Part shown: positions 4,700 through 48,570 of the stretch, piece by piece
Layout: each line of letters opens with the position of its first letter
Numbering within the stretch: the first letter of the stretch is position 1
Origin: Monocercomonoides exilis PA203
Lineage: Eukaryota > Protista > Preaxostyla
DNA length: 64,000 nucleotides
Assembly: GCA_001643675.2 (NCBI GenBank)
Contig: LSRY02000013.1
Span: forward strand, 248,001 to 312,000
Direction: 5' to 3'
Made by a program: the position numbers and the translations under genes
The notes under the pieces: generated by a model
The model's database searches: none
Seen by the model: the letters and a program-made list of their open reading frames with translations, nothing else
What the model was told of the DNA's origin: nothing

Positions 4700-6770
4700 A
4701 TTCGCATTTGAATGGAATCACTAAGAAGTGATAAACTTTCGTAATGCAATGTGAATGCACTTGAAAATAATGCAAGAAATTGAAAATAAAAACGAACAGG
4801 AGCAGAAGACTACCGATGCGAAAGGAAACAAAAACGTTGGAAGTCAAAAGGCGTTCGAACAGAAAATGAAGATTAAAATTGGAAGAACCAATAGAATAAA
4901 AGACGTTAAGTGATGTGATATTTAGCTGTAAAATATCAATTTCGCGTGACATCATCAAAACACAATTTGCGTTGAAGCTATACGCTAACTGAATGAAGTT
5001 GGAATTGATCAGGCGGAAAACGGAAAGGTGAATCAGAGATTGGGAAATTTTTCTATTCAAAGGAAAGTATTGCAAAGAAAAAGCAGCTTATTGTGACTGA
5101 GAATGCGATGACAGTTGGATAATAAAGTTAGACAAGCCGCAAAGAGTGGAAGAACTGCTGAGTCGTTAATGCTGATGAACAAGTTCACAAAATCAGCAGA
5201 GAAAGTTGAATACGATGAGAATTGCTATAAATCATGAAACAAAAACTTCCAAGAATGTTAAATAGAAAGCAGTGAAGAAGAAGTCAAGAAAATGGGGAAA
5301 TCAGCAAGAGAAGAAGAGGAGCGAAAGTTATTAGAAAGGAAAGTTAAAGCAAAAAATATATTTTTAAGAGAATGGATGGGATTGCCGCTACAAGAAACTT
5401 ACTCGAGGATACCAAAGCTAAAAGAGCTTTAGCCCCATTTCTTCAATCGGAAGTTAGTTCATCGTGAATCAAACAACAAGAAAGCGACATATCTTTCCAT
5501 CATCACAACATCGGAATCATCGGATGCTTAAACATTTTCATTTCTGTTTAATTCGCTGATTTTTCAGACAACTGAATAACTTGTTACGTCATTAATATGA
5601 ATTGAAGCGCAAAATGAATGAAACAGAAAAGGATGTTGGGAACGTTATATGGAGAGAATAAGTACAGAGCAGATCAGAAGATGTGCTAGATTTTTTAATG
5701 TTTTAATGCAGCATCAAAGAAACGTGAAGGAGGTTGAGAGATTTCCACGAGAGAAAAAAAGCGAATTTGATGGAAAGCATGATACTTGCTTCCACACAAG
5801 TGAAGGAGAAATTGCAAGGAAAGTGAGGCAGAAATGATTGTATGAAAAACTAAAGAAAAGGGTTTTTTTATATCATGCTGTTCATTTTAATCAACTTTTC
5901 TATCACTTTTGCATACGCAGGAGTTTTTGCGAATTCAAGGATGCTTTGATGCTCTTTACATACTTTCCAACAAAATTTGCTGTGTTTATCTCGTAATTGA
6001 AGAGAATATTCGAACTTGTAAGAACGAGATATATTTGCTCTGAAGCATTCGAGAAAGGATATGAATTAGTATAAGACGGCAGATCATTTTGCACAGCTTT
6101 AGGTAAATTACACCAACCGAAAAATATTTGTTTGCTGAATAACGGTGCTTTCTATAGATGCGTCCAAGTGAATGAAAGGAAAGACTTAATTTAAAGTTTT
6201 GCTGAATCAACATTTTGGACATATTAATGATAATGGTTGACCTTTTTTGCAGATAAAAAAAGATCATCTGAAATTCTTTGCGATTGCGAATTAACATATG
6301 TTCCTGTGTTGTTAAAGCTAATTGGATTTAATGAAGAAGACACTTATTTTTAAGCATTGAAATTTGATATTATTTGTTTGTTTTGGTCAGGTGCGTGCAA
6401 GAAGCTGTTGTTCAGCACTAACATCTGTTCTCATCTAATATGATGGTAAATGAAAAAACTTTCCCTGGCATTTGAAATAGCAAAAATCAGAAAAGCACAC
6501 TCACGTCTTGTTTGTCAAGCAACCTTTTCAGGAAAAGGAAATCAAAGGATGATGAAAACGATGAACAAAAAGATGTGAATGTTCGTAATGAAAGATAAGG
6601 AAGTGAAAAAAAGAAACATTGAAAATTTGATGAAATATCTAAATTTGGAAGACGAAGTTGAGTGAGCCTTTAAATGATGCTGCAGATTTACAAGGTTCAT
6701 CTTCAGACATCGCAAAAAAGTTAAACATTTTGCATAATCAGATAACGAAGCCTTGTTCACATAAACCATG
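4700..6770. pseudogene. Possible decayed coding or repeat-derived DNA of unknown origin
   Basis: Purine-rich, codon-like stretches broken by stops (e.g. KVRQAAKSGRTAESLMLMNKFTKSAEKVEYDE near 5120-5220). No intact ORF and no recognisable family. Confidence 0.2.
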
Positions 6771-6787
6771 AAACTTCAAAAACTCTA

Positions 6788-9700
6788 CTAATTGAAAGCT
6801 GATGCACTTCCAGATTCATCTTCACTTATGCAACCACCACTTTCCGGTTCGTTGTCAATTGCATCTGACATTGTGAACATCACAGCGCCTGAGGGGAATC
6901 TTTGGATAAGCTCTCTCTTAACATCAGCAAGATTGGGTCTCTGCTCATTCTGCTGTGAAAAGCAAATCGAAGAAAGACGACTGAGTGTTGACTTTCTTAT
7001 GCATGCAACATCTGGCCTTTCTCCTTTTGCAATCTTGTCTCCAGCAATCACAGCCTCGTACTCCCCGAACGGGATCTGGAGTGTCAGACACTCCCACAGC
7101 ATCATCCCGATCGAGAACACCACCGACTTCTTTGTTGCTCCCATCTTCTTGTTCATCTGCAGCTCTGGCGCCTTCCACCTCAGACACTCCTTTTTGTTGT
7201 CATCCTCATCCTCAAAGGCAGACGAGGGCAAAGAATCTCTATCATCATCATCATCATCGCTGGCAGATGTCGCAACAGTTGACGAGGAGATGGATGAGGA
7301 ATCGGAATCATCGTCAGATGAGAAGTCGGAGTGCATCACGATGCAGATGACCATGTGCTCAGAGAACAATACAATGTGGGGACTGAGATTGGCAAGTGAC
7401 TGAAGAGGATTTTCCATTTCATCAAACGAGTGAATGGCTCCGTTCGCCACCCAGAACAGGATCTGAGCAGCTGTTTGTTCTCTTTCCTTCAATGAACCAA
7501 TTGGCATCTCTTTTGTCTTATTCCTTCCGTGGAGCAGCATGAACAGTGAATCCCTCAGATCCACAATCAGCTTCTCATGAGGAGATGAACAGGCCATTGC
7601 ATCCACCAGGTTTGACATTGATGAAGTGGTTGGGCACAGATCCTCCCCTCGAACAAATGTTGAATCTGAATCGGTTGTTGAAGTGGATGAAATGGATGGA
7701 GATGGAGTCTGCTTTCTTATCTCTTCCTCCTCCTCCTTTTCCAATGCCCAATCAGGGATCTTGTCTGAATCTTTCCCTAGGATATATTCTGTTGATCCAC
7801 TCTCAGATAGAAGATGCTCTGATGATTCTGAATGTCCCAAGCTTTTCGCATACACCCTCTTCTTCATCCTCTCATCATTCTTCTTCTCAGCCTCCCTCTC
7901 TGCTCTCCTCCACTGCTCTTCTGGTGATATCTCCATCGTCACCATCTCGAATGCCTTCGGATCCTTCCTCACTGTATTTTCCACAATCACTTCAAGCTCC
8001 TCAGTTCTCTTCTTTTGCTTTCTCCACCGAACAGTTGAAATCACTGCAACGATTAGAATGACAAGAAGCACAAAAGCCATGATAATAACAATCAACAACC
8101 AATACGATTTCCCTTCTTTTCCTCCCTCGACAATCCTTTCATTTTCATCAATCTTGGGCTCACTTCTGTTCTTCAAAATAAAAGAATCAGTGGATGATGG
8201 AGCATCAGCATTACCAAAGAGCAGGCATGCTGATATTTCGGTTTCTTCATTGATTGACGGTAGCTCAGATAAATGCAAATCAGAACATATTACATTTTCG
8301 CTCACAAAGTCTGATGCATTTGTCATTTTTATTATCATCACTTCTTCTTTTCCGTTTTTTTGCTGCAACTGCATAGATAGATTACACGGAATAAGGTATT
8401 TTCCAAGAAAAGTGATTCTTGTCTTATCAGTTGAAATAGAGGCTAATTCAACACTATCCAAGACAGGAATAAAAAATGCGGATGTTCTCTCCTTTACGAT
8501 TCCTCGGAGCAAGCATCCATCATTCAAAATCCACAAACTGCTTCCCGGTAACAAGCCATCACCTCCTTTCAAGCTAGCTATATCAATTACTCCTCCATTT
8601 CTGCAAACTATATTCCTTCGCGCTGATTTAAATGATGGAATCAATGGATTGTTATTCACAAACATCCCCATTTTTATGGTTGTGAATCCTCCAAAAGCGC
8701 TTAATCCTCCACTTTTTCCATTTTCAACTATGCTTTCAATTATTGAAATTGACGAATTCGCATTGTCAATGATCGACTCGTTCCATTGGCAAATATCTTC
8801 TCCTTTGGAATCTTTATGATTAAAAACACTGACCTCTTCATTGATTTCTCCGTCAAATTCGCAAACGCTCATGGTCACATTTGTACACTCTTTGATTGCC
8901 AAAATCCTTCCTTTCTCTGCTAAAGAACTGCAACTCAGAAATGAGCAATTGGCCAAATTATTTGGGATTTTGCAAGATGAAATAGCCATTCCACATGCAT
9001 AACTTTCCATCGATGTGACATTGCTCATGAAAACATGCTCTACCTCGCAATATCCCTCCAATTTCTCTGAGAGCATCTGTGCATGTTGCATTAACTCTAT
9101 GGCACTTCCGCTTTGAAGTTTGAAATTTCGAACATCCAATTCTTTGATCGATATCTTGCTTTCGGTTGCTATTATACTGATTAAGTCATGCACTCCTTCC
9201 ACTGATTTGATGCATATCTTTTCAAAGGAGATATTACACGAATCTGATGAAATGAAAGTTTTAACAATTGACGAATTGCATTCAAATGATATGAGTGAAA
9301 CTTTTGAATCTACAGTAGAAATTATGCTTTCATTCATCAAGCATCTTGTGATCTCCATTTCATCCATATGGATAATTGCTCTAAATGCTGTGATAAATGA
9401 CAATGTTGAATTAATTTCATGAATATTCACGGAATTGGCTTGGAAGCTACAAGCTTCATTTACAACAATAACCGAATTCCTTGTGCTCAATAATTCAAAC
9501 GAAACATCAATCAAAACAACAGATCCGCTTTTCACCTCAATCACAGCTTCTGTTAATTCAATAATTTCTGCAAGTGATCCAAATGAACTCATTGAAAATG
9601 TGCTCTGCCCATCCTTGATCAGAATCACTGCTTCGCAAGTCGACTCATATCCTCTCAGAAACATTATATCTATTTTTTCGAATTTCACGCTTCCGCAGCA

Positions 9701-12700
9701 GTTGATCGTTCCTGTTCCATATGAACTTTCCTTGAACTTCTCTTCCATTTTAACTTTACTCCTCTCACTCATTGATCCACTTCTGACAGCCACATCTCTG
9801 CATTCACATTCTTGTCCCACTGCTGTCTCGCTCACTACAATCACCTGACTGTAGCCAGATGGAATTATGTGTCCGAGCCCATACCCTAGAGATGCACAAG
9901 GCTGAATCCATTGCCCGCATGGGTTGACATCTGCCGATTCATTCGATACATCGTTCACAAATATCAGCTCATTCCGATACGTGACAATCAATGGTATTAA
10001 ATCAACATCACTTATTGGCTCTGTTGAATCTGTTCCCCATATCGCATTTTCACGATCATACGGAGGCTCTCGAAAATCCAGCAAAAACTGACTCTCATTT
10101 ATCTGTTTCCTGAGTAATTCACACACCACAAATATATCCCTTCCTACAATTGCTTCATTCTTACGAAAATTTACATTCGAAAAGAGGATAGGCAATATTT
10201 CCTCATGTGTGTGTATTCCTTCAATATAAATCCCACCTCCTTTTCCAACCTTTGTTCCGCACCTAACCACTTTCGATTCATTCATTTCAAATGTTGTTCT
10301 ATCACAGACTGCCACAAAAAATGAGCCTCCAAATCTACTTTTTTCAGAACTGCATTCTGTGATAGTTGAATTCTTTACCAATATACTTTGGATATTTTCA
10401 ACCGTATGAGATTCCATCACACATGCACTTTCTCCTCTCCCACTCATTGATTCAATATCACATGAATCCATAAGCACACTTCTTACAGAATTCTCTTCAC
10501 TTGGCACTTGCAGCGCGCTGTTTATCACCAAAGCACTTTTAATAAGTGGAATTAAAAAAAAACAACAGTATTCAAAATTAATTATCCCATCTGATATCAC
10601 AAATATGCTTTCAGCAACGCAAGAATCTTCTCCACAAACAAAGCGGCAATTTGCCACAGTTAACAACGAATCTGGAAAGCAATGCGATATTACTCCTTTA
10701 TACTTTACAGGTGTTGTGCAATTCAGTTGAAGATTCAGTTTACGCAACGTTCCATCCTTCACCTCAACAATGTTCTCTCTTTTCTTTTCTTCTCCAATTT
10801 TTATTCGCAGATCTGCATATGCATCATTTATCGATTCAATTCCAATGTTATCAATAATAAATTCTTGTTCAATATGTGCATTTACATTGACTTTTACGCA
10901 CAGTTCTCCCTCTCCTGCTATTCTGTTTACCCCATAATCTACACTTCTGCACTCAAACACACTCTGTCCACATCCAATGTGGTTCATCCCTTTCGTAGAG
11001 CTCACAAACACCATGCTTGCCTTGTATCCAAGGATCAGATAAAACAGATCTTCATCCTTCTCTTGAAACCAAACATCGTCTATCCCTCTGAGTGAATTGT
11101 TTCTATCTTCTTGCTCAATTAATGATGCCCATCCGCATGAGCTGCTGTTCACAATTTCAATTAAACTGTGACATTTCAGAAACATATCTTTCCCTACAAT
11201 TGCTCTGTTTGCATTAAATGTCAAATGAGACAAAGTCAAAAGTGTATTTTCTTCCTTGCAGCATATCCACATCCCTCCTCCATAGCCTCCACCACTTCTC
11301 GAGCTTTCTGAAGCACATCCGTATAACATCATTTTCTCCGTTTCATTCCCGATTAATAGACTTCCTCCACCACTAACAAAAAACAGCATTCCACCCCCGT
11401 TCCCTTCATACACATTACAGTTTTTCATCGAGCACCCAACCATCTCCACGCAGCATCCTTCTCCAATACTTCCTTCAATCCCTCCTCCATTTCCATCGTT
11501 AACGTTTATCTTCTCTATTGTGCAGTTCTTCATTCTTACACAACATTCTGCTCCAAACGAAATGCATGATTTTTGATCCAACCAGAACGATGAAATGCTG
11601 GTGTCCTCTATCTCCACAGTTCCACCTTCAAAAACAGCAACAGATGTTCTGAATTTATTGTCACTGTTATGTTCGATATCCGACGTTACCTTGCAACCTC
11701 TCACTAACATATTTCCATTTCCAGACAAATGGAATACTGTTGCATCTGCTGATGAATCTGATGAGCTCCTTACAATGCTGAACAAACTCATGGACAATGA
11801 TCCAGAACTGACATAGAACAATGAAGACAGAATTGTTTTAGAAACTATTGTAGCTTCTCCGTTCACTCCCTTTTCAATTTCTATAATCTTCTCACCAATT
11901 TTGCATTCACCCTCTGTTAGAACATCATTCTCCACAACAATTTTTGTTTGATATTGTGAAAACTCGTTGGCAATCTCCACAGCGTATTGCATCGTTCTGC
12001 ATTTACGCTCGTTTTTTCCGCATGCTTTGTGGTCAATTCCAGCATTTCCATCTAAATGAAGTTCACTTAATGATCCATTGAATATCCAATCGCTAACATC
12101 AGCATCTCCATTTACCACTCGCCTATTACCTTCAGTCATCGACCTGCACTCAATAAAAATTTCTTTTTTTGCATGACTCACCCACCGCGCTTTGAAAGAT
12201 ACATCCTTTCCATCCTCTCTGCACAAATTATCCTCAAAATAACAAAATTTTATTAATGATGTCCAATCACCTCCATAAGTTCCATCTCCTGCAAAGTTGA
12301 TTCCGCCTCCAAATTTTGCTTCGCATCTAAAAAATCCGCAATCGCTCACTATTATATTTTTTGAGTCACCAATCATTAAACCTCCTCCACCTAAATTTGA
12401 TACTGGTTCTCCTTCATCGCATTCCAAAAATAGGCATTCAGATATTGTATTGTTTTGAACATATCTGTTCAGATATACTGCTCCTCCTCCCATTTCTCCG
12501 TGATTTCGAGTATAATTAACTTTACTGAGAATCAAATTCATTTGATAATCAAGATGAGAAAATCCTGCTAATTGTTTTGCAGAACAATTAATTGCATAAG
12601 AATTGTTAATCGTTAAGTCCGAATTAACATATCCGTAACCAGTGAACAGAACACCCCCCTTTAGTTCCGAACGACATTCAACAAATGCACAGTCAATAAA

Positions 12701-13633
12701 AGTCAAACTACTTGTGATATTGTGAAAAATTGCTCCTCCATTATCATTTGATCGACAATTAAATAGACAATCAGAAAAAATAACTGGATTAGCTCCAGAT
12801 GTTGTAACTTTTTCATTGTAAACATGCTGAGCAAAGCAACGTTCAAATGAACAGTTTTTTGTGTTGAAGCCACCTATGCTTTTCATTCCTAGTACAAGTG
12901 TGCCTTCATAAGGTGAAATTGTATTCTCAACTTTTGTATTCTCAAACACATTTTCCACATTTGCAGTTGCTTGTGTTTTATTTGAAACGATACATTTACT
13001 TATATTATCAAATTGACAATTGATAACAGTTAAAGATGAAGTATATTCATTGCCCACAAATGGCTTCATGGAATTTATCAAAACTGAATCAAACGAACTC
13101 CAAGAAACAAACACATTGCAAAAGAGTTTCTCGTTTTTACTATCATCAGAAGAAACCAATGAACCAATCATTCGTGAAGAACTTGAAGCGAAAAGGCTGA
13201 TATTATTCAATTGAATTTTCCCATTACAACAAAACAGAGAATTTGCAATTTTGTCTGTTGTATATTTTATCCTGCATTCAAAAACAAAAACATCAGATAA
13301 TTCGTTGCAGTAAAGGACACTTTCGTTTCCAGAATTCAAAAAGGAAATATGAATTACCTCAATTGATGAATTCAAACATTTCATATGTGTTGATGCAGTT
13401 CCATTTTCAACATCTCCTTTGACATAAATACTTTCATTTCCATGTGACACTTGGCTGTGATACAAAAAGATATTCTCTTCTTTGCAATTTACCAAGAACT
13501 TATTTGATTCAATAATTCCAAAACATTTCATTTCATTCTTATCAAAAATGCAATGTGTCAGTTGTTGACAATCAGATGTATTTTTGGTGATTTTTGGGAA
13601 TACAACGAGAAGAAACAAAAATGAGAGTAACAT
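6788..13633 (-). CDS. Giant single-pass receptor-like protein (gene A, ~2280 aa): signal peptide, Cys-rich beta-helix/Pmp-like ectodomain with 3 CGxxxxxC modules, TM helix, C-terminal pseudokinase C-lobe
   Basis: Intronless ORF with likely start MLLSFLFLLVVFP at 13633. Repeated GGG/GGAI and FxxNxA motifs. TM WLLIVIIMAFVLLVILIVAVISTVRWRK. Kinase subdomain VIII-XI remnants RWKAPE...VFSIGMMLWECLTLQIPFGE...RP. Confidence 0.85.
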   Translation of the reverse strand: MLLSFLFLLVVFPKITKNTSDCQQLTHCIFDKNEMKCFGIIESNKFLVNCKEENIFLYHSQVSHGNESIYVKGDVENGTASTHMKCLNSSIEVIHISFLNSGNESVLYCNELSDVFVFECRIKYTTDKIANSLFCCNGKIQLNNISLFASSSSRMIGSLVSSDDSKNEKLFCNVFVSWSSFDSVLINSMKPFVGNEYTSSLTVINCQFDNISKCIVSNKTQATANVENVFENTKVENTISPYEGTLVLGMKSIGGFNTKNCSFERCFAQHVYNEKVTTSGANPVIFSDCLFNCRSNDNGGAIFHNITSSLTFIDCAFVECRSELKGGVLFTGYGYVNSDLTINNSYAINCSAKQLAGFSHLDYQMNLILSKVNYTRNHGEMGGGAVYLNRYVQNNTISECLFLECDEGEPVSNLGGGGLMIGDSKNIIVSDCGFFRCEAKFGGGINFAGDGTYGGDWTSLIKFCYFEDNLCREDGKDVSFKARWVSHAKKEIFIECRSMTEGNRRVVNGDADVSDWIFNGSLSELHLDGNAGIDHKACGKNERKCRTMQYAVEIANEFSQYQTKIVVENDVLTEGECKIGEKIIEIEKGVNGEATIVSKTILSSLFYVSSGSLSMSLFSIVRSSSDSSADATVFHLSGNGNMLVRGCKVTSDIEHNSDNKFRTSVAVFEGGTVEIEDTSISSFWLDQKSCISFGAECCVRMKNCTIEKINVNDGNGGGIEGSIGEGCCVEMVGCSMKNCNVYEGNGGGMLFFVSGGGSLLIGNETEKMMLYGCASESSRSGGGYGGGMWICCKEENTLLTLSHLTFNANRAIVGKDMFLKCHSLIEIVNSSSCGWASLIEQEDRNNSLRGIDDVWFQEKDEDLFYLILGYKASMVFVSSTKGMNHIGCGQSVFECRSVDYGVNRIAGEGELCVKVNVNAHIEQEFIIDNIGIESINDAYADLRIKIGEEKKRENIVEVKDGTLRKLNLQLNCTTPVKYKGVISHCFPDSLLTVANCRFVCGEDSCVAESIFVISDGIINFEYCCFFLIPLIKSALVINSALQVPSEENSVRSVLMDSCDIESMSGRGESACVMESHTVENIQSILVKNSTITECSSEKSRFGGSFFVAVCDRTTFEMNESKVVRCGTKVGKGGGIYIEGIHTHEEILPILFSNVNFRKNEAIVGRDIFVVCELLRKQINESQFLLDFREPPYDRENAIWGTDSTEPISDVDLIPLIVTYRNELIFVNDVSNESADVNPCGQWIQPCASLGYGLGHIIPSGYSQVIVVSETAVGQECECRDVAVRSGSMSERSKVKMEEKFKESSYGTGTINCCGSVKFEKIDIMFLRGYESTCEAVILIKDGQSTFSMSSFGSLAEIIELTEAVIEVKSGSVVLIDVSFELLSTRNSVIVVNEACSFQANSVNIHEINSTLSFITAFRAIIHMDEMEITRCLMNESIISTVDSKVSLISFECNSSIVKTFISSDSCNISFEKICIKSVEGVHDLISIIATESKISIKELDVRNFKLQSGSAIELMQHAQMLSEKLEGYCEVEHVFMSNVTSMESYACGMAISSCKIPNNLANCSFLSCSSLAEKGRILAIKECTNVTMSVCEFDGEINEEVSVFNHKDSKGEDICQWNESIIDNANSSISIIESIVENGKSGGLSAFGGFTTIKMGMFVNNNPLIPSFKSARRNIVCRNGGVIDIASLKGGDGLLPGSSLWILNDGCLLRGIVKERTSAFFIPVLDSVELASISTDKTRITFLGKYLIPCNLSMQLQQKNGKEEVMIIKMTNASDFVSENVICSDLHLSELPSINEETEISACLLFGNADAPSSTDSFILKNRSEPKIDENERIVEGGKEGKSYWLLIVIIMAFVLLVILIVAVISTVRWRKQKKRTEELEVIVENTVRKDPKAFEMVTMEISPEEQWRRAEREAEKKNDERMKKRVYAKSLGHSESSEHLLSESGSTEYILGKDSDKIPDWALEKEEEEEIRKQTPSPSISSTSTTDSDSTFVRGEDLCPTTSSMSNLVDAMACSSPHEKLIVDLRDSLFMLLHGRNKTKEMPIGSLKEREQTAAQILFWVANGAIHSFDEMENPLQSLANLSPHIVLFSEHMVICIVMHSDFSSDDDSDSSSISSSTVATSASDDDDDDRDSLPSSAFEDEDDNKKECLRWKAPELQMNKKMGATKKSVVFSIGMMLWECLTLQIPFGEYEAVIAGDKIAKGERPDVACIRKSTLSRLSSICFSQQNEQRPNLADVKRELIQRFPSGAVMFTMSDAIDNEPESGGCISEDESGSASAFN

Positions 13634-23257: not shown

Positions 23258-26200
23258 TTATTCATCACTTTCAACATCTAATAATTCGATATCTTCATCA
23301 CTTTCATTTTCTTCATTCAATCTTTGCTTGCTCCTTCTCTGAGGCTTGCTTCGTGATTTGTTTCCAATCTTTTTGTCAGGCTGTGAATCGCTCCAATCTC
23401 CCTCATCTGATTCATCTGCATTTTCACTGTAATTTTCCACCTCTTCCTCTTCGTCTGACTCATCGTCTGTGTAAAGTGGCTTTTGTTTCGGCTTCCTTTT
23501 CCTCAGATTTCGAGTCTCGCTCTTCTGCTGCTCGCTCTTGTCATTCTCCAAATTCTGTGCAAGTCGCGACTGCTGCGCACCTCCTCTCCCGCGGCCTCCT
23601 CTCCTCCCTCTTCCTCTCCCTTTTGGAGGATGAGCAGAATCGCCTTGCCCCTTCGCATCTGTCAAAAGTGCAGCTGGCTTATCTGCTGAAGCTCCATCGC
23701 CTTCCACCCCCTCCTTTCCGGCCTCTGCTTTCCTCGCTGCCTCCAGCTCGTCTGCTGCCAGCGGCTCCACTCTGCCTTCGCTGATTTCTGTGATGTACTT
23801 GTTCAGCTTCGTCAGGGCAGCATCGATGATCCCTTTCCTTTCTTCGCCATGGAACCGCACAAACTTCCTCACTTTTGTTGCTGTCTTCGCAATGTGCCTC
23901 GCAAACACCTGGTCAATCTGCGCGACCGAAAAGAACAGCGTCTGGCTGCTCAAAGCCTTCGTGAACGGGACAGATGAGCGGTCGCCGAAGGGAAGAAGCG
24001 ACAGCGTCAGCGCTAGCAGACGGAGTGTGTTGACAGACACAACTGCACCTGAGGCAGCAGACATAGCTCCATTTGGAGTGGGTAGCGATGGCGTTGAAGC
24101 AGGCGTGGGCGAGGCAGAAGGGAAGAGAGCTGACTCAGTCGTCGTCTGCAGCACAGAGGAAGGATGGGGCTGCATAAAGACAGCACTTGAGGACTCCTGA
24201 AGAGTGCCCTGTGGAACAAGAGGGGTGGGAACAACAAAAGTGGTGGAGGGAGAAAGAGAAGCTGTTGGCATGTTTGGAGAGGAAGAAGGGGAAGGCGAAA
24301 GAGCAGAAAATGAATGAGGAACAAAAGAGGCAGTGGGTGTTGGAGCAGGTGGCTGTATTGTCTTCATTGATGGAGAAAGAGACAGAGCAGGTGTAGTGGA
24401 AGGAGTGGGGTATGCACTCGATGCCTTGAAGCTGGCATCGTCTGCAGAGAATGAGCGAGAGTATGTTTTGATGGCTCTGATGATGCGCTCTGCCACAGAC
24501 GCTGTCTGCGACTCATTCAGCGACGCCATTTTGATCAGATGGTCAGCAATATGCTGATACTGGGCAGTGGTGATGCCGAGGAAGAAAGACGGTAGAATGT
24601 GTATGGACTCCACCCAGTCGTCTCTGCCGTAGTCTGAGGGCGTGCTGTCGTATGCAGACGGAGAAGGCGCAATAGACACAGACTCTGCTCTTGTGATGTC
24701 CATCGTCTCGTGCTTGGCAAGCGCTGGCCCTTCGCTCTCTTCTGCCTCTCTTCCACTCCTCCCTCTCTGGAACGACGTCTGTATCCCCGTGTGCAGATGC
24801 TGCCCAGACGCCAGCGAAACAAGCGTCTCTGCAAGCAGATTGTACAGCGACTTCCCTTCGTGTGCGAGTGTGTCGACCAGCTGCTCTGCCAGCCCTGCCA
24901 GCACCGCATCCTTCTCCACCAAGCACAGCGCCACAAACGGGAAGTGCATCCGCAGCTTCATCATCCCCGTGCGTGTCAGGCTGTTCACTGCCGAAAGGGC
25001 TGCTCTTCTGACAACAGCTGCCTCGTCGTGGATGCGAATGCACAGCAGATGCGCATACGGCGCAGCCAGCGACGGATAGCGCGTGAAGGCATCGGCAAGT
25101 GAGAGGCACATGTTTGCTCGTGTCTCGGGTGAGGCAGAGTCCTGAAGGAGAGTAAATGCCAGCTGCATGTTGTCGCTTGCATACTGTGGATCCAGCATTA
25201 TGAATGCGCTCAGTGCAGATGCTGCCAGCGTGGATAAAAGAGGAGCATAGCGTCCTCTGCTGATCTTCGGCTTCTCTTTCTTTGGCTGTTCTTTCTCCAT
25301 TTCATCTTCAGACACACTCGGAAGTGACACTTCTTCATCCAATTCTTCATCCATAGACAAAGCCTGAGAGGAAGGAAACGACTCTGCCAGAAGAGTGTTC
25401 ATCTTCTCGTTCTTCTCCTTGTTCCTCTCTTCAATCGCTGTCTGTTTCTCCTCCTTTTCGTACCAGCTCGGTGGCTGCATGTTCAGCCACACACACACTC
25501 CCCCAAATGTGTCCACAATAAGCTTCGCAAGCGAGCCAGGCGGTGCTGTCGCAATCTGCTGGGCTGGTGTGCTCTGCGTTGTGCTCTGTGTTTTGTTTGT
25601 GGAAGATGCATTCGCACTCATCCCGTGTGACATCACTCCTGTCAGCGCTGCTTCCAGTCCGCTGTCTTCGTCTGAATCTTCTTCCTCATCTCCCTCTCCT
25701 TCTCCCTCTTCTCCTTCTCCTTCGCTTTTGCCATCCAAATTGGCTTTTCCTCCTTTCTTTTTGTGATGCTGGCTGTGTTTCTTCGCTTTCTTCTGTTTCT
25801 TCTCTCCTTCTTCTTCATCCATTCCATCTGAATGCTGTCTGACATCTTCTCCTTCTCCTTTGATCTTCTTTCCCCTCTTTCCCTTTTTCTGCTCATCCTG
25901 CAAGCTCTGCTGATTCCCCTTCGCCAGCTCCTTCAGCTCTCTTCTCGACTGCTCTGCTGCTTTTCTCTCTCTCAGCACAGCATCTGCCAGCGCTATCCTC
26001 GACACCAGAAAGAGCAGCCGCCCCAAACACGCCGAGCCACACAGGGCGGTCTCTTTATTCGCTCTCTGCCTCCGAAAGACTGTCTGTGCCCAGAGTGGAA
26101 TGAAGCGGCGGAAGAGCAGCTGGGGGTCGGTGCAGACGGTGAAGACGGTGACGATTCCTTGCTGTGCCACAGACATCCACTCAGCAGCCGCAGAATGAGT

Positions 26201-29200
26201 CAGTTTTCCTGTGCAGAGAGAGAAGAGCGCGAAACAGGGGGCGAAAAAGCGGTGGTTGGTGGGAAGAAGAGAAGATGAGGGAGAGGCTGTGAATGAAGAG
26301 GAAGAGGAAGAAGATGATGATGAAGCTGAAGAAGCTGATGTGGATGCTTGAGAAAGAGGTGATGAAGAAGGAGGAGCAGACGAAGAAGGCGCAGACAGAG
26401 TGGCATAAGCCGAGTAGCTTTTCGAGATGAGTGTCAGTGCCAGCCGTGCTGCCTCCACCGAATTCGGAGGGCGCTGCAGAGCAGAAGAAATAAGACTCAT
26501 CAGAACACCCAAATTCATTCGGATCGTCACCAATGGCGTGTCTGCTGTTGTGCTGCTTCCTTTTCCTTGTTCTCCTGTCTTCGTTTTGAGCGCAGGGAGA
26601 ATCGCTGTGAGTGCTCTCAGCGCTGCCAGAAGCTTCTTCTCGTTCTCCTTCCGTTTCTCTTCTGCTTTCTGTTTGTCTGCCTCTGCTGCACTTTGCTCAG
26701 CTGCATTGTTATTCGCTTTCTTCAATGTTGATGCTTCCATATTGTTTCCATTGCCTTCGTTCACATTCACCATTGAGACAGTCTCTGATGATTGTGCACT
26801 TCCTTCTGCGTCTGCCATCTTCATCTCTGTCGAAACAAACTGACCTGCTTTGGCATCTGCACTTGCACTTGCACTTGTTGTTGATGATGTTGAAGAAGCA
26901 GAAGAAGAAGCAGAAGAAGAAGAAACAGAAGAAGAAGAAGAAGGAGCATTCTCTTCCTCATTCCACATCGATGGCTTGAATATCTTCACTGCTGACCACA
27001 GCGCATCGATAATCAGAGGCTTCAGCTCTCCCTTTTCAGCAAACGTTCTCAGAACAGTTTCCACAGCAAGCGCGTGCGATGGACTTAACTCACTGCACAA
27101 AGTGACAATTCCAGCTGCAATTGTTGCGCACTGCTTCTTCGTGATTGCCTGCACAACTGTTGAGCCAGTGCCACTTTGGCTGCTGCTGCTTCCTGTCTTG
27201 TCTGCTCCTTTCCCCCCTCTTTTCTCTTCATCGTCTTCATTCTCATCATCTGAAATCCCATCCCTGCTCTTCTTCTTCTGCTGCTGCCTCCTCTGCTGTC
27301 TCTTTCTCTCCCTCTCCCTCTCCTTCTCCTTCTCCTTCCCGCTCAACCCCACACCTGTTATGGATGCAATCGCTGCATTCTTCGTCGTGTACACCTCTGG
27401 CAGCCCCACCACCTCTCTGTAATGAGCCAGACACGCCTCCCTCATCGCTGCATCGGGTGACCACACAAGTGCTGCCAATGCATCGTCCACATGCGATTTG
27501 TACTGCTCAAAGCGGAACGGCCGCAGCGCCGTCGCCAGCTGCACTGCACTCGCCACGTCGGTTACAGACTTCGAGCGGAGCATGTGCGAAAGCGCGGGGA
27601 AAGCACGTGTTTCGATGAGGTCGATGAAGAGAAGAGAAGATGTGAGGTACTCTCGGGCGAGGAGACGACGGCGGAGGAGGTGGGGATCTTGGGGAAGGAG
27701 AAGGGGAGTTATGGAAGAGGAGGAAGATGAAGATGAAGATGAAGGGGATGATGAAGATGATGAAGATGATGCTGATGATAGTGCTGGATCAGATGACGAA
27801 GAAACAGAAGGTGATGAAGCCTTTGCAGACGCAGGAGAAGAAGATGAAAGAATCGAAGATGTTGTTGAAGTGGATGAGATGGACAAAGAAGACGACTTCA
27901 TTATCGAAGAGCGTCTGCGAGGCGAGCGCATCGGAGTGATTGTGAGGCGCCTGGCAATCTTCGCCACGTCTTTTTCTTTGTCTCCCGTCTCCTCGTCTGT
28001 CTCATCGTCGCTCTCTGTGTCTTCCAATCTGTCTGCTGCTCCGCCATCATCTAGCTCATCCACACCTTGTTGTGTCGCTGCATCCACAAGGCTCTCTGCA
28101 AACTCGTCTTCTGCTTGTTTCTCTCTCTTTTCTTCGTCTTCGGCACTCTCAACAACATCCATACGATTCTTCTGTGTATCTTCTTTGTTGTTCTCTTTCT
28201 CTTTTTCCTTTTTCATTTCGATCTCCTTCAACCTCCTTCTCTCAGCCTCCTCTTCCTCTTCCTTTCTCTTCATCGCTTGCTGCCTCTCCTTCTCTTCCTC
28301 CTCCTCCAGCGCCGTCAGAATGTCCAGCTGCTTTTGATACGCTGCCCGTGCCAGCGCCGCGCCAAACGGGTTGTTCTCCACCAGCTCCTTCACACACCCC
28401 GCAGCTGCTCTTCTGACAGCAGGCGTCTTGTCGTTCAGTCTGTCTGTGGCGATGGCAGTGGCAGAGGCATACAGGCGGTGGGGGATCGAGTGAGAGGCAC
28501 ACAGCTCAGCCCAGCAGTGCAGCACACGCGCACGCGCATAGGCAGACACGTCCATCACACGCTCAGTCAGAATAGAGAAGAGATTGTCGATTGTCGTGTT
28601 CAGCTCAGCCAGTCGCTTCTCTTCGGGTGATGATGAGGGATGGTCGGAGGCTGCAGACGAAGAGGAGGAAGAGGAGGAGGAAGAAGCAGATACAGAAGAA
28701 GAAGAAGAAAATGATGATGATGATGACAACGATGAAGACGAAGATGAGGAGGATGATGAAGAATTGGCACCAGCAGCGGAGTAAATAGAAGGCATTGCTG
28801 TTTCAAACGGGAGAGAGCTTCCAGAAGAAGACAGATTGAGTGTCAGCTGTCCTTTTTTGCTGTCTGCTCTTTGCTCATTTCCCTGTGCATTCATTGCCCC
28901 AGCCTTGTTTCCATTCCCTTCCTCACCCGATGCCTGTTCGCTTTTGTCTCTCTCATTGCCGCCTTTGTCCACACTCTGCCCAGACGCAGTGGAAGCAGAG
29001 ATGGCTTTGCTCAGCTGTGTCGCCTGCTGAGTGAGTGCTTTGATGAGCCGCATGCACATTTCTGCTATGCCGTTCCGCAGCTGATAGGAATCACTCCCAA
29101 AATACGGCAGAATCTCTGGGCAGAAGCGGAGCACAACAAACGGACACCGCCCAGCCAGTTCCGAAAGGAACAGCCCAACGCTCTTTGCTGCTGCGTCTGC

Positions 29201-30789
29201 CGTGTTGCCAATCAAGTCGTTTCCGTCTGACTCCTTCTTCTCTTTCTTCTTTCCTCGCCCTTCGCCTCCATCTCCCATGCCAGTAGCACCCGCTGCCAGC
29301 TCGTCCATCTCGTCTCCTTCATTCAGCTCTCTGTATTCCCTCTCCTCCTCCGCAGCTGCCTCCATCCCGCCCGCCTCTTCCCCCTCAGCTGTCGTCTGCT
29401 TTGCCTTCGCCTTGGCAGCGGCGCTGCTCTCCTTTTCGCTCTGCATCTTCGCCTCGATTCCGCCGAGTCCGCCAGGCATGTTGATCAGCTCAGTCAGCAG
29501 CGCATCCGCCAGCAGGCAGCGGTCAGACGTCGCATCAACAGCGCTTCCTGCACTGAACAGTTCCTCATCGGCACCATACCCTTGAATCGCAATCAGCGTT
29601 GTCCTCCGCTCAGCCCCGTCTTTTGCCAGTGCGCTCTCCATCATCGCGTGGCGGAGGTCGACCTCAGACATCTCAGACAGAAGCGTCGGAGCGTGCTCAA
29701 AGCGGAAGAGTAGAGAAGACAGCGTCGAGGTGAGGAACGGGTGCGCTCTGCCAAACCGGCCGTGGAGGAGGGTCGCCAGCGACACACACGCCGCCTTCAC
29801 TTTCGTCTTCCGCAGCAGCGCCGGTGACTGCAGGCAGTACATCGGCAGAGAGAAGACACAGTTGAGAAGTGGCTCTTCGATCTGCGATGGATGCGCTGCT
29901 GCTGACGAAGAGGAAGACGATATCGGAGCAGCTCTTCCTTGGACCTTCCACAGAGAGTTTTCAAGCTGCTCCAGCTCAAACACATCGTGAACTAAGTCAC
30001 AAATCCGAATAAAATGCCGATCAACCCAGTCAAATGACTCAAGCTGTGCAGCTGCACTTGTTCCTTTGAGATACCCATGCGCCGATCGAGAATCGCTCTT
30101 TCCAGAAAAATTCTTCCCTTTTTCAAAATCATCCATCGCCAAATCACTTAAATGGCACAATAAAAATATGTACATTTTTAAAGAGTTTCTTAAAATAAAT
30201 GCGTTTTGAAGAGTTGCTGGCTCAAAGTCAATTGTCTGTGTGGATTGAGAAAAAGTTTTTCTTCCTGGAAATGCAGTCATTCTTGGCGATAAAGGTGGCG
30301 AAATAACAGTCAAACGAGGAGATAATGGAGTGCTTATTTCATTATCCACAGTTCGTTCAAAACTTCGAATGTGAGTAATTATGGATTGAGAAAGAGAACG
30401 AAGACCATTGCACAATAGCTCAACGAGCTGGTTTTTTGAACGATTATCTATTGATTCAAATGACTCGATTCTAAGCATTGAGTACAGAGAATCAAACGTA
30501 GAATGCTCAAGTATTGCATGAGGACCGTTATCAGATATAGAATCTTTAAATGTGAAAAAATGTATTGAAATAAAAAATAAATAAATTTTTTAACGTTAAA
30601 AATTGGATGACTCAAATATCTTTCATGAAATTTAAAAATCAAACTTTCAATTTGTTCTAAGGTGGCAGAAATATCTGCAGCTGAATCAAAATCAGAAAGT
30701 GTTTCCACTTGAAATCGTTGTAAATCGTCTGTTCCAACGGCTAGCTCTTCATATTTCATAGGAATAATAAATTCCTCATTTTCAGACAT
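23258..30789 (-). CDS. NCAPD2: Condensin I HEAT subunit CAP-D2/Ycs4/Cnd1 (~2476 aa), one intron 30544-30644
   Basis: N-terminal EFIIP...FDSLYS after splicing. Conserved blocks ERVMDVSAYARARVL, RLNDKTPAVRR...LVENNPFG, LRSKSVTDV, and the Cnd1 domain RANMCLSLADAFTRYP...DEAAVVRRAAL...GMMKLR. Confidence 0.9.
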
Positions 30790-34452: not shown

Positions 34453-37400
34453 ATGATATTCTCTTTGTTTTCAGTTTATTTCAACTTCATTTTCTCTTTG
34501 AATATTATTGAAAATGTCGAATGCCTCTCATCTTCGAAATCTTATCCAATGCCTTCCTGTTGTCATCAAAATTCACACATTTTTGATTTGCTGTCTCTTC
34601 AAGATTCAATCAATATCCAAGAATCACACGGAAAGTCTGAATGTTGCATGAAATCTCAATTTGCACTGTTAAATTCATCGCTCATCATCAATGACGCATC
34701 TTTCTGTCAGAATTCATTTTCTTCCACTTTCATATTAAGACTCACATCCAACTTGCGTTTGCATAGTTGCAGAGCGCGATCAAATAATGACCACATATCT
34801 TCACAAGTGTCATCCTGGGGAGGCTCCGTGGAGTTATTCAATTTCTCAATAGCATCACACACACATGTTATTCAACATCCTCTAACAATGAATTGTGAAG
34901 AAAGCTCGTTGTTCATGCTGCAATGCAAAGATTGCACTTTCAATTCATTGACAAATGTTCATGTTTCCTCATTTTTGGCAACTGGGCATGTCACACTTTT
35001 TGTTGCTGACGGATGCAGCTTTTCAAACATTTCTCACTCGCCCTCCCTTCCTCATCGCTTCACATCACATGCTACCCCATCAATTTGGAATTCGTGCCTA
35101 ATCCAGAACTCAAAATTATATTCATGCCCCAACGCCCAATATGGAGTTGTTGTCACACCAACACAGAATCTGATGACGATGATGAACACTTCGTTCTCTC
35201 ACTCTTCTGATACTCACTCCCCGACAAACGGCTCCATCAACAGCTATTCTTCAGGAGATGTCATAGCCTATTCAGTCCATTTTTCAAACATAAGTGATTC
35301 AAATCGCATGGGCTTGGCATTGAACATCGGTGGAAATGCCACTTTGAACGCTTCATGTTGTTTGTTCGAAATGATAAATGCATCAAATGATGCAAGCAAT
35401 GTGTATGGAGCAGCCGTGAGCCACAAAGGCGCTGGAGTTCACTATTCACACAAATGCAATTATACAAATTGTTCCTCTGGCTTTGCGGTCGGTGGATTGG
35501 ACGCTGAGACATCAACACAAAAAATGATAACTTCTTGCTTTTTTGATAAATGTGATGCACAATATTACTCTGCCTTTTTTTTTGGAAATGAAAATGGAGC
35601 ACAATTAATCAAAATGAACACTATTAAGAATTGTGCCGCAACGCATCACACAGCAGGAATAGGCATTTGCTTCTCCACTCATAGAACATGTATTTCTGAA
35701 TGTCATACAGTTTCATGTAACTCTTTCTCGGCTCTTGGAGCCATGAGCTTTGTGTGGTTACGCGAAAGCATTCCAGGTATAACGGCAATGATTCATTTTT
35801 GTTTTTTTGAAAAAAACACAATAGGAAACACATCTTATGGTTGTGATGTCTCGACAGATTCTTCCTATTATAATTCTAAAGTGATAAATGAATCGTTTGT
35901 TCACAGTTACTCCCTGAGTGATTGCCCGATTCGAGTGACAATTAATTCCATTGATCACAGCGACTGGCTTGGACGCCCTCAATCAACCATCCCAGTTGTG
36001 TTCGTTTCATCTGTGTTTGGCAACGATTCTCGAAGTGAATGTGGGTTCGGAGGCTTGCCCTGCAAAACAATCGAAAAGGGAATTAGCAAAAGGGTCCGTT
36101 CACAGCCGTTAGTGATTTCAGAAGGATCATACATCCACGGATCGATCCCTGTTGATGAAATGAATGTGAGTTTGAGAGGCTGTGAATTCGAAGAGTCGAC
36201 ACTGACTTCCAATGCAGTTTGGGATGGAAAAGCACTGTTTTCAGTATCATCTGGCATATTGTCTGTTTCATATTTCACTGTGGTGCACACTTCTTCGAAT
36301 TCGAATCCACAATCATCTGTCTTGATGATGAGTGGGAGTGGGCGAGTGACAATACACTTTTCAACAATAAAGGGAGAAGCATCCCCAGCAACGACTTTTT
36401 CAACTCCTTTGATGATTGTTAATGGAGGTCTGGCAGAACTTGCTTCTGTTTGCTTCACAACTTTCAGCAACGAAAAGCAACTGATATCGTTTTCCTCTCC
36501 AAATTATCTGAAAATGAGCGATGTGACTTTCAACACAATCACTCGACAAAGCGGAAATGGCGCAATATTTGAAGCACAACTTTTGGATGGAAATGAGTTT
36601 TGCTTGTCAAATGTTTCTTTTGCAGATTGCTTGTGCCTCAGAGGAAACGGGGGTGGGATGCAGATACACATGGAACGTGGATCATCGTTTTCAATAGGAA
36701 ATGCATCTGACATAGGAGCAACAGCCAAGATGAACAACTGCCAGGCCATAGGTTCTTCGGTGAGTCCAAGCTGTGGAGGAGGATTGCTCATAAAGCTTGA
36801 CAAAGATGCAGACAACTTTCTTTTGAAGCAGCTGGCGTTTGAAGGGTGCATGGCCGATCAGGGAAACAATCTATTTGTCGATGCCTGGCAGCTGGACAAA
36901 TTGATAAATACCACAACCCTTGAGTTTGGGCCAGGACGCAATGATCTTGATGGATATGCTGGATATGAGAGATCAACAGCTGGAGAAACATTGTCTATCC
37001 CTCTTGTGGTTTATCTGTGGGATAACATGTCTGCATTTGCACATGTTGGTGGAGAGAAAAGTGCAGATTTCAGCAGGTGCGGGTATTCTGAGGTCCCATG
37101 CTCATCAATTATGTCTGCAGCCTCTCTTTGGTTCAAAGACAGCAACCGTTTTGTTGAGCTTCATTCTCCCTTTTCCCTCAGATCTGAATTGCTTCTTGAT
37201 GCTTTCGAATGGACAATAATGTCAAGAGTTGGCAAAGTGACGATTGGTCTGGACGATTGCAATTTCAGCGGTGAACAAGCAGGGATGATTGAAACGGTCT
37301 CAAAGTCGGCGCTCACAAACTTCACTTTTGCACTGCCAAAGAGCATTGGCTTCAAAGAGGCATTGATTGTGTGCATGTCTTCTTCGCTGAGTGTCAAAGG

Positions 37401-46357: not shown

Positions 46358-48570
46358 TGTTTGCTTCTCTCATCCCATCACAACCATCGCTATCGTTCCC
46401 AGCCCTCGTATTCATCTCGTTATCTCCTTTTTTCATTTTTGCTTTTGGTGAATAATAACAAGAAAGATAGAAATGAGTGCTGCCCATGGCTTCTGAAGGC
46501 TTTCTTTTGTTTTGTTTTGTTTTGTTTCTGTTGCCTCCAAACAGGGCTTGGCATTTGCCAGCCAGAGTCTGATGTTTGCGTTTTTCTGTGTTGTTCCTGC
46601 ACTTCGCTCGAAAGTGATTTTTCACAACCACTTTCGTTTTATTGCTTGTAAACCCACTTCAAAATGGAAAGGCACCGAGCCAAATGATTTCTGAAATCCT
46701 TTGATCTTCCTCTGTGAATTGCGTTCTTCTCTGAAATGAATGTTCCTCAAAAATGAATCCCAGCATCCTTGCATTGACTCAGCCAAGAAATCAAAATAAA
46801 AAAAATATGTGACATCGTTGGCACCTGCTCAAAAACCCAGAATGCACCTTTCTCAGCCTTGGCCAAATTTCTAGAGTCATGCCAAGATGACTTTTTTTTA
46901 TTCGTTCAAAACATGAAATATGTCAATATAGAAATTGTTGAGATAAAAATAACGGCAAACGATGTGAAAGGAAATGGCATTCAAAGAAATGGGAGGTTTC
47001 AAATAAGTTCCATCAAAATGAAGAGAGAAGCACTCTGGAATTTATTTTTTTTTATTGAAAGCTCATTGCCTCCTTCTTTCAAACGATTCGAGACAAAAGG
47101 CAAGAAGCTGAGTCATCTTGCGCATTCTTGCAGCGATTGCACCCAGCATCTTGCATTCCCATTCCATCCCAAAATAACTGCATTCCCCAATGAAAAATTC
47201 CCACCTCCATCAACATGGCACAGATTCACAGAGTATCTCCTTCCACTTTGTCATCCTTTTTGCGTTTAGGCGTTGATCACCAGCTTGGCACTTTCAGCCG
47301 AAGCATAAATATCTCTTCCCTTTTGAAATAGAAGCGCGCTTTCGCTGCTGATGACACAAACAAAAATTAGGCACTCAAGCTTCAGCTTTCAATTAACTTG
47401 CGATGCTTCGGGGGAAAAATGAAATAAAAAAATGTAATTGTGAACCAATGGAACATTTGCTGGCCATTTCTTGAACGCTCCAACTTGATCGGAACATCGC
47501 TTCTCTGCTTCCATTCGCAATATCCCTTGTTTCCAATTTGAAGAATATGCTATCGCCACAACTCTGTGCCCTCCAATCAACACACGCACCTGCTAGTTGG
47601 ATGCATGCCCTCCAATAAAAGAGCTGTTTTTCCTTTTCCTCTTATCCTTTTCCTTCCAGAATCTGTCTCAAAGCAGCAGCAACGATACAAATACCGAAGC
47701 ACGCAAAATCATTTGTCGGCAAGCGCATCAGATGGTCAATGTCAATTTCAGTTCTTGTTCATCCAGCCATTTTCTTTGCTTTTCGCAGGCAAACATCCCT
47801 CACATTTTCGCTTTCCACAAAATGTGACATGGCAACTGCACATTTTGGAGGGGAAAAAATAAAATAAATAAAATGCGCCAATAAAAGCAAACTGAGCTGA
47901 AGCCTCTTCAGTTGGCCATTTCCCAAACGATTTTTCTGCCAATATGGCTCTCATGGAATTTCTCAGCAAAAAACTCTTAAAAAAGAAAAGAGCTGTTCTT
48001 TTCAACAAAAGCATCCTTTCCATTCATAAAAATTCCAAACCTCTTTTTTTTTCTTGCACCTACAACGCATTCAATATTTTTATGTTCAGATCCTCAAGCA
48101 GAAGCAAAGGTTAGATTCTTTTTCCATTTTTGGAAATAAAAAATAAGGCATCGAAAAGAAAAGGCATTTCATGCTCGATGTTAGACAATTCCAAAAGATT
48201 GCATGTCTTGAGATATGCTTTATTGCTTTATTGCGAGCAATGTCTTTCTGCGCTGGCACCAGGCATTCCCTCGTTTTTTGAGTCATCGAAAAGAATCTCC
48301 ACAAAAATGAGAGAAATGAAATAAAAGAGCATTATCATCTGCAATGAAAATAGCTTTTGCTCAGTGGCTTCTTGCAATGGTCGCTCTTCACCGAACAACC
48401 ACAGTCCGACTCACACAAATTGATAGGAAAACAAAAATCATCTTTCAAATGATACGCTCTCTGCACAAATTGCAATCTTTGTTCAATGCTTAAATTCTAT
48501 CGAATCCAGCAACATTGCACGTTCATCCGTTTTTGTGCTGCCTAAGAGCAAATACACGCTTTTTGTTCTC
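37128..48570 (+). repeat. Left arm of 11.4-kb inverted repeat
   Basis: Reverse complement of 51435-62878. Mirrored ORFs have coordinate sums of about 100003-100006 along the whole arm. Confidence 0.97.

Follow-up and report, generated by a model that had tools for sequence, protein, structure and literature searches.

Giant receptor genes and their shared cassette

The window analyzed here is a 64,000-nt stretch of the Monocercomonoides exilis PA203 genome (C7:248001-312000). It carries genes for giant single-pass receptors, which we call A and B, the latter present as B1 and B2. Genes A and B share a cassette that encodes the transmembrane helix and most of the kinase-like cytoplasmic part (Table 1). 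An earlier interpretation based on the nucleotide letters (hereafter the sequence-only reading) had described this cassette as sharply bounded and nucleotide-homogenized among otherwise highly divergent receptors, and had proposed it as the core of a candidate diversification system. We compared the cassette within the window and across the genome, and asked how much of its similarity reflects protein constraint and how much reflects exchange between copies.

Table 1. Coordinates of the receptor genes, their parts and the gene B palindrome in the window.
Feature	Position	Strand	Description
Gene A	6788-13633	minus	Giant receptor; open reading frame (ORF) open from 13723, first Met 13633; from N to C: signal-peptide-like start, long Cys/Asn-rich repeat ectodomain, one transmembrane helix, ~410-aa cytoplasmic kinase-like tail
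Type-specific tail of A	6791-7020	minus	Kinase helices H-I and C-terminal extension; almost unique genome-wide
Kinase C-lobe-like region of A	6890-7258	minus	Pfam PF07714; encloses the cassette 3' edge, past helix G
Cassette in A	7021-8210	minus	1.19 kb, 81.3% DNA identity to B; short membrane-proximal island, transmembrane helix, ~250-aa juxtamembrane region, kinase C-lobe-like part ending at helix G
Near-identical tract of A	7021-7143	minus	Shared with B-type genes B1/B2, C7:120267 and C7:215868; 1 mismatch in 118 nt
Tract of A closest to paralog L010 (C32:874468)	7140-7364	minus	87 polymorphic sites, 5 mismatches, global p 0.0015
Tract of A closest to paralogs L025, L021 (contig C11) and L015	7637-7862	minus	
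Gene B1	34453-46357	plus	Full length, signal-peptide-like start; cassette 44945-46142; one-base homopolymer differences (42620, 43552) divide it into three ORFs
Palindrome, left arm	37128-48710		11.6-kb arms; delimited by inverted repeats I1-I6
Unique spacer of the palindrome	48711-51293		2.6 kb
Ras/Rab-like small GTPase gene in spacer	49037-49657	minus	In-frame stop at 49469-49471 between two same-frame ORFs
Broken Merlin/IS1595-type transposase remnant in spacer	~49785-51190		~25-nt terminal inverted repeats near both ends
Palindrome, right arm	51294-62878		As left arm
Gene B2	53646-62889	minus	Mirror of B1 without the first ~890 codons and the signal peptide; cassette 53861-55058; one-base homopolymer difference at 55804

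Alignment of the A and B cassettes confirmed exactly that 7021-7138 and 53861-53978 differ by a single mismatch (7088, A/G). The high similarity ascribed to the cassette as a whole did not hold, since only 960 of 1181 ungapped columns are identical, with 30 further gap columns. Growing outward from the 3' end, mismatches amount to 4 in 135 nt, 6 in 150 nt and 23 in 236 nt, and identity in consecutive 119-nt windows is 98, 82, 85, 78, 88, 79, 77, 88, 63 and 75%. Nei-Gojobori values were obtained from a codon alignment of 26 family members. Between A and B1 the proportion of synonymous differences (pS) is 0.117 in the last ~150 nt of the cassette and 0.574 in its core, where the corrected synonymous and non-synonymous distances (dS and dN) are ~1.09 and 0.08. 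Outside the cassette pS is 0.84 in the tail and 0.73-0.75 in the ectodomain. Nucleotide homogenization was not seen: synonymous sites in the cassette stand at a pS of ~0.5 (dS ~0.8-1.1), and near-identity is confined to the last ~120-135 nt of the A-B pair. The argument that purifying selection does not explain synonymous identity is valid for these last ~120-135 nt, but not for the rest of the cassette, where dN/dS is ~0.07.

The edges of the cassette were only partly as sharp as had been described. Between A and B, identity falls to 37% ungapped (46% aligned) past 7020 and to 47% upstream of 8210. Across the family, amino-acid identity drops sharply over the 3' edge (0.90 to 0.68 to 0.26), whereas the 5' edge is gradual, with values of 0.5-0.68 in the membrane-proximal ectodomain, 0.54-0.65 around the transmembrane helix and 0.85-0.98 further in. 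The 3' edge lies inside the kinase-like fold, just past the helix-G motif, and not at a domain border.

The kinase-like part is incomplete. The PF07714 profile matches A (E 1.5e-8) and B2 (E 2.9e-10) over profile positions 159-258 of 258 only. Among solved structures, the pseudokinase ILK gave the best match, through its C-lobe (E 7e-7). No kinase model or solved chain aligned upstream of the activation-segment/APE region, and no sequence match to an N-lobe was found. By eye, HRD is absent from the invariant stretch at the expected catalytic loop, and 'HSD' followed by L or F stands in the place of DFG. The cytoplasmic alignment is extraordinarily conserved and contains long invariant runs. 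An AlphaFold2 model of the cytoplasmic domain of A, built on the 26-member alignment, had a mean predicted local distance difference test (pLDDT) score of 39.6 and was too poor for use; the predicted order of helices and strands, taken alone, would be compatible with a kinase C-lobe. Known counterparts are ILK and the receptor pseudokinases and transmembrane kinases of protists. The M. exilis receptors share with ILK the resemblance in the C-lobe and perhaps a scaffold role in place of an enzymatic one, which is only proposed for the receptors. They differ in that the C-lobe is their only detectable kinase part, and the resemblance is one of domains, not of orthology.

We searched the PA203 Oxford Nanopore Technologies (ONT) assembly (82,301,135 bases in 101 contigs) with the cassette and obtained 1086 candidate places, 40 of which were scored (the query and 39 others at 81-84% identity). 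Three further searches gave 1067, 976 and 980 candidate places. The count of copies that the sequence-only reading had called for therefore comes to roughly 1,000 candidates. Passages of two genome papers annotate the largest M. exilis gene family as "protein tyrosine kinases"/TKL, overlapping with "unclassified repeats" on all chromosomes, and count it as kinases with 332 models (PMC6759080; PMC8767320). The cassette genes are the same genes as this published family. A receptor architecture or an incomplete kinase domain is not described in these passages, and a term search of PMC8767320 found nothing on palindromes, on an inverted arrangement or on gene conversion.

Among the analyzed copies, DNA identity in the cassette is 78-95% (median 83.6%), with a family median of 0.063 for the proportion of non-synonymous differences (pN) vs 0.536 for pS. 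When only codons for the same amino acid were compared, the family median pS was 0.51 (5-95% range 0.33-0.60), while random codons drawn at the observed usage gave a simulated saturation of 0.82-0.87. The same measure for A and B1 is 0.57 in the core vs 0.84 in the ectodomain. Copies homogenized to near identity, as in classical concerted evolution, were not found. The C-terminal tail types are discrete and chromosome-specific (loci L002-L030; contigs C9, C27 and C7): tails ending in ...ISTTDR and ...TSIVSY occur on C9, ...ENMK(I/F)E on C27 and the B type on C7. Many of the genes at these loci are arranged in convergent pairs with their cassettes 3-19 kb apart.

Exchange of cassette segments between paralogs

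The near-identical tract at the 3' end of the cassette is common to A, B1/B2, L004 (C7:120267) and L026 (C7:215868), and the B-side genes share one tail type. Contig C7 harbors all 13 B-type tails of the genome, which flank A on either side, and a tree of the tract places A with the B-type genes (99% support). Between A and its nearest tail relatives, one residue of the tract peptide is changed, whereas the DNA changes are numerous and for the most part synonymous. Elsewhere in the family, 13-28 of 120 tract sites do not match A, again mostly at synonymous positions, and the synonymous sites of the tract are not especially conserved there. The simplest reading would be that the tract is a short conversion patch between A and a B-type neighbor. 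It ends at 7021 because family-wide homology ends there.

A different explanation would be that the 118 nt form a functional element at the nucleotide level, such as an antisense gene, a small-RNA target or a structured RNA, which is conserved for itself. Two long antisense ORFs on the plus strand do run over the cassette (6792-7403 and 7626-8819), and over the final 150 nt the family-wide pS is somewhat reduced (0.43 vs 0.54). However, the tract varies at synonymous sites in the other members, an Rfam scan of the whole window gave no match and the antisense ORFs do not occur at matching positions in B. We therefore consider such an element hardly credible. The antisense ORFs were also rejected as genes in their own right, on account of these unshared positions and of synonymous sites that are too diverged for a second frame; they would be expected wherever the sense strand seldom uses TTA, CTA and TCA codons.

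Tests over the whole cassette pointed to exchange. The pairwise homoplasy index (PHI) was 0.793 over 471 informative cassette sites, compared to 0.906 +/- 0.006 after permutation (z = -18). In a GENECONV-style test, for which the order of 598 variable sites was permuted 2000 times, 24 of 325 pairs had globally significant shared fragments of 55-271 nt (global p < 0.05). The breakpoint test suggested by the sequence-only reading thus revealed shared tracts in excess of permutation. In the fragment shared by A and B1, only 1 of 47 polymorphic sites is mismatched (global p = 0.0025), and the global p values for the near-identical tract of A and the B-type genes are 0.0025-0.0065. The part of A closest to the B-type genes in this test is 7031-7143. 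A and L025 have 3 mismatches over 103 polymorphic sites in the tract at 7637-7862 (global p = 0 of 2000 permutations). Accordingly, the cassette of A is a patchwork of 100-225-nt tracts from different paralogs. Trees of consecutive segments conflict, since the sister of A is L015/L021/L025 in one segment, then L010, then the B-type genes and then L016, with 96-99% support; congruent trees for all segments, an outcome that had been named as contradicting exchange, were not obtained. Linkage between sites is near background within 30-60 nt.

In the juxtamembrane region (alignment columns 1-70; ~7830-8029 in A) the family members carry two or three alternative peptide blocks, and every combination of these is found. 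These shuffled blocks are the mosaic seen at the protein level.

Exchange also separates the cassette from its flanks. In the trio B1, L004 and L026, identity is 95-97% in the ectodomain, 72-85% in the transmembrane/juxtamembrane part, and 79-86% in the cassette core; it reaches 96-99% over the final 138 nt and 98.6-99.1% in the tail. Same-amino-acid pS in this trio is 0.49-0.59 in the core vs 0.02-0.09 in the flanks. Recent duplicates with flanks that are 95-99% identical carry 14-28% differences inside the cassette. The cassette, which had been regarded as the most similar part of these genes, is hence the most divergent part between recent duplicates. Among 12 distinct B-type genes a 3' module is 90-98% identical; it consists of the final ~150 cassette nucleotides, the tail and intergenic DNA over 1.5 kb or more. 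The core is 82-91% and the ectodomain ~60% identical. The 11 best non-self matches of the B1 cassette (85-91%) are all on C7. The clades of C9 and C27 show a milder gradient, with identity increasing in the direction of the tail and with core pS at or above the ectodomain value. Pair values thus lie near one intermediate pS whatever the age of the flanks, which fits frequent exchange in a very large pool. We rejected targeted hypermutation as an explanation for the divergent cores of recent duplicates, because the differing blocks were found intact in other paralogs.

Palindromic gene pairs allowed single events to be followed. Of the 13 B-type genes, eight are arranged as four tail-to-tail pairs. 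Arms can be as close as 2-4 differences in 3.2 kb vs 3-12% between palindromes; the arms L054 and L055, for instance, have 4 differences over 3258 positions. The arms L052 and L053 are identical across 2.9 kb except for a patch of ~390 nt with ~45 differences. The L053 form of this patch recurs with 100% identity in both L054 and L055, the arms of a palindrome at a distance of 43-51 kb, while matches of the L052 form elsewhere in the genome do not exceed 88%. Between these two palindromes, intergenic DNA differs by 3-12%. L053 is the recipient, L054/L055 the donor and L052 the unconverted reference. In a further palindrome (C7:711979-721594) the arms L050 and L051 are identical from just past the transmembrane helix to beyond the gene, but the ectodomains, of >3,300 and ~2,100 codons, show no blastn similarity. 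This junction inside the cassette bears out the earlier suggestion that different ectodomains can be joined to one tail there.

We thus observed shared tracts, mosaic structure, decoupling of the cassette from its flanks and one case with donor, recipient and sister arm. Together, PHI, the permutation of tracts, the conflict between segment trees and this last case support ectopic gene conversion in the cassette, as had been proposed. With long shared tracts, tree conflict together with the compatibility of neighboring sites, and a named donor, recipient and reference, the family behaves like multigene families under ectopic gene conversion. Shared ancestry with purifying selection but no exchange, with the 118-nt identity due to chance or local constraint, might seem sufficient, given that a dN/dS of ~0.07 covers most of the identity and that core synonymous sites are far diverged. 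It is contradicted by PHI and the 24 globally significant tracts, by the well-supported conflict between the tract tree and those of neighboring segments, and by near-identical flanks around a core with a pS of ~0.5. Nor does it explain that the L053 patch equals its donor while the sister arm differs, or that the synonymous sites of the tract are free to vary elsewhere in the family. We therefore judge a history free of exchange to be very unlikely.

The gene B palindrome and the reliability of the assembly

The cassettes at ~44945-46142 and ~53861-55058 had been treated as separate paralogous copies. They are instead situated in the two arms of one palindrome. As delimited, the arms have 78 differences in total. 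The outer 3.7 kb contain 39 substitutions; the inner 7.7 kb (40834-48570) contain 0 substitutions and only 6 one-base homopolymer indels (including those at 42620, 43552, 44199/55804, 47426 and 48044). In the innermost ~140 nt (48570-48707) there are ~33 differences, so that arm identity decays at the inner edge. Substitutions in the outer arms (37167-40833) are clustered, for example at 38898-38904, 39511-39519 and 40830-40833, which suggests small conversion patches from other paralogs in the ectodomain as well. Each frameshift in B1 (42620, 43552) or B2 (55804) is intact in the opposite arm and lies in a run of A5/A6 or T3/T4. These frameshifts may be residual Nanopore errors where short reads multi-map, and we handled the frameshifted B genes as separate ORF pieces.

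The outer boundary of the palindrome falls within gene B (34453-37128; 62878-62889), and the 890-codon N-terminal part is kept by B1 only. One arm is thus a 5'-truncated copy of B, yet it is still held identical to the full gene. Palindromic arms that are far closer to each other than copies in different palindromes are to each other, and that enclose a unique spacer, agree with arms held alike by arm-to-arm conversion.

The spacer contains two broken or doubtful genes. The Ras/Rab-like GTPase is either a pseudogene or a gene with a tiny intron. In the Merlin/IS1595 remnant DDE motifs are recognizable, but it has two in-frame stops and its match to Pfam PF12762 is below threshold. We ruled out that the B1/B2 palindrome represents the giant inverted ends of this transposon, since the remnant has its own ~25-nt ends and is an ordinary insertion. 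Elsewhere in the window, a minus-strand gene (23258-30478) encodes a 2406-aa HEAT/Cnd1-repeat protein and has a GC content of 52-55% vs 26-44% in the remaining window.

Since the family is so repetitive, the patterns described above could in principle stem from assembly or polishing, with reads mis-mapped over ten Pilon rounds or Canu mis-joins in the cassette. The assembly was indeed made from ONT reads with Nanopolish and 10 Pilon rounds, the family overlaps with "unclassified repeats", and the inner 7.7 kb of the B1/B2 arms differ only by homopolymer indels typical of residual ONT error. However, paralogs that are ~17% apart let 2x300-bp reads map uniquely. Mis-polishing pulls toward a consensus and would not yield 15-25% divergence in recent duplicates. 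The palindromes have unique, gene-bearing spacers and outer arms that are 1% diverged, unlike fold-back read artifacts. In addition, short-read contigs from independent DNA runs of 2016 and 2022 extend from the A-specific tail over the 7020/7021 junction and 8-26 nt into the tract, with the branch point of a B-type contig located precisely at 7020. Word depth rises from ~31 to thousands on entering the cassette; Logan contigs break at every shared 31-mer, and none bridges 7020/7021 by a 31-nt criterion. The concern of the sequence-only reading that cassette identity might be a polishing or mis-mapping artifact is made unlikely by these contigs for the 3' junction, by the 8-26 nt that they span. 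Overall, we regard an assembly artifact as a very improbable source of the mosaics and palindromes.

The A-specific tail (6664-7037) and ectodomain (8352-8588) are also present, at depth 3-5, in contigs of 2024 metatranscriptomic RNA-seq libraries labelled 'synthetic metagenome'. These contigs are weak evidence of A transcription. DNA may be present in the RNA libraries.

A probable mixed recombination pool and comparable gene families

Our preferred interpretation, to which we assign a probability of roughly 80%, is that the cassette is a constrained and well-mixed recombination pool, shaped by purifying selection together with frequent ectopic exchange, and not a homogenized block. The transmembrane helix, the juxtamembrane region and the kinase-like C-lobe remnant up to helix G would form the constant module of the giant single-pass receptors, and very strong purifying selection on the protein (dN/dS ~0.07) would account for most of the 81-84% nucleotide identity between copies. 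As the only part that can be aligned at the DNA level among ~1,000 paralogs, the cassette would serve as substrate for frequent ectopic homologous recombination. Most events would be short conversion tracts of ~50-500 nt, commonest among neighbors on one chromosome, with occasional exchanges that place another ectodomain before the same tail. The expected outcome is a mixed pool, in which all pairs show a similar intermediate pS of ~0.5 while their flanks are saturated or nearly identical. The 118-nt identity would then be one such patch, copied between A and the surrounding B-type genes of the same contig. What we infer from these patterns is the molecular route (whether conversion or double crossover), along with the rates and any advantage that the cell might gain.

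Several points weigh against this interpretation. The synonymous sites are far diverged, and multiple hits combined with rate heterogeneity among sites can erode linkage and imitate some of the PHI signal; the decay of linkage is partly due to multiple hits and is supportive only. The family-wide pS of 0.5, which is below simulated saturation, could in part reflect site-specific codon constraint. The direction of the A/B transfer is inferred, because the nearest relative of the A tail, in an inverted pair on contig C16, is only 81% identical (over 156 nt). The analysis covered 26-38 of ~1,000 copies, which were picked for similarity to A or B, and a core more divergent than both flanks is striking only in the B-type group. 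Finally, this is a Nanopore and Pilon assembly of highly repeated DNA, in which short de Bruijn contigs bridge neither the 5' junction of the tract nor the palindromes.

The cassette could alternatively belong to a programmed system of diversification or antigenic variation, in which cassette and tail-to-tail palindromes are a selected anchor for frequent ectodomain swaps and one or few genes are expressed. The architecture fits, being variable outside and constant inside in ~1,000 copies; recombinants of ectodomain and tail exist, and the identical tail-to-tail pairs parallel the arrangement of vsp genes in Giardia (PMC2996952). On the other hand, we saw neither an expression site nor a switch element or a dedicated enzyme. 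The tracts resemble ordinary homology-driven conversion, in that they favor neighbors and end with homology, and recombinants that are fixed in the assembly imply evolutionary and not somatic exchange. A-specific sequence was present only at low depth in RNA libraries that possibly contain DNA, and M. exilis is regarded as a commensal (PMC6759080). We therefore consider a programmed system unlikely, and nothing we tested points to one of the var/VSP/VSG-like kind that the sequence-only reading had brought to mind. It is also unlikely that the cassette and the recurrent tail-to-tail palindromes are a selected recombination hub on a dead receptor kinase. Such a hub would retain one signaling tail and keep generating new combinations of ectodomain, cassette and helix H-I tail; with a subset of genes expressed at a time, it would be a surface-variation system of a commensal metamonad that parallels the variant-specific surface proteins (VSPs) of Giardia. 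On present evidence no new kind of mechanism is revealed.

Known gene families help to place these observations. The var genes of Plasmodium falciparum (exon 2/ATS) and the variant surface glycoprotein (VSG) genes of Trypanosoma brucei (C-terminal domain, 3' end) combine a variable exposed part with a conserved C-terminal or intracellular part. They form mosaic genes through ectopic recombination, and their conserved 3' part limits conversion tracts; switching, expression sites or epigenetic exclusion and immune selection have been demonstrated for them. The M. exilis family likewise is large, with a variable exposed and a conserved C-terminal part, and it shares the mosaics and the conserved 3' part that bounds tracts. 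It differs in that the conserved part is itself the main tract recipient. In concerted evolution, and in the ampliconic palindromes of the human Y chromosome, ectopic conversion lets a repeat and its flanks follow different histories and keeps arms identical. The decoupling of cassette and flanks in M. exilis corresponds to this, as do the L054/L055 arms, which remain alike while palindromes diverge by 3-12%. In M. exilis, however, ~1,000 donors lead to mixing at ~17% divergence and not near identity, and, unlike in Y palindromes, conversion from outside repeatedly breaks arm identity within the cassette.

The closest parallel in a fellow metamonad is found in the vsp genes of Giardia, a large family of surface proteins with a variable ectodomain and a conserved 3' end, with identical tail-to-tail inverted gene pairs a few kb apart and with recombination detected by GENECONV in the conserved 3' region (PMC2996952). 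The VSPs differ in their CXXC-rich ectodomain and a cytoplasmic tail of 5 residues, compared to a module of ~410 aa with a kinase remnant in M. exilis, and in their number of ~300 copies as against ~1,000. For VSPs one-at-a-time expression has been shown, whereas the M. exilis family is known here from its gene sequences.

These results bear on the mode of evolution of the largest gene family in a well-known "amitochondriate" model eukaryote. One constrained intracellular module, present in ~1,000 genes, would act as a shared recombination substrate that separates the history of the tail from that of the ectodomain, so that new combinations of ectodomain and tail can arise. DNA similarity is here not equivalent to homogenization. 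When donors are so numerous, conversion blends the copies but leaves them distinct, and it can place the largest differences between recent duplicates in the most conserved part of the protein. Phylogeny, copy count and orthology of these "kinases", when derived from the conserved domain, would consequently be misleading, and the published tyrosine-kinase annotation needs revisiting.

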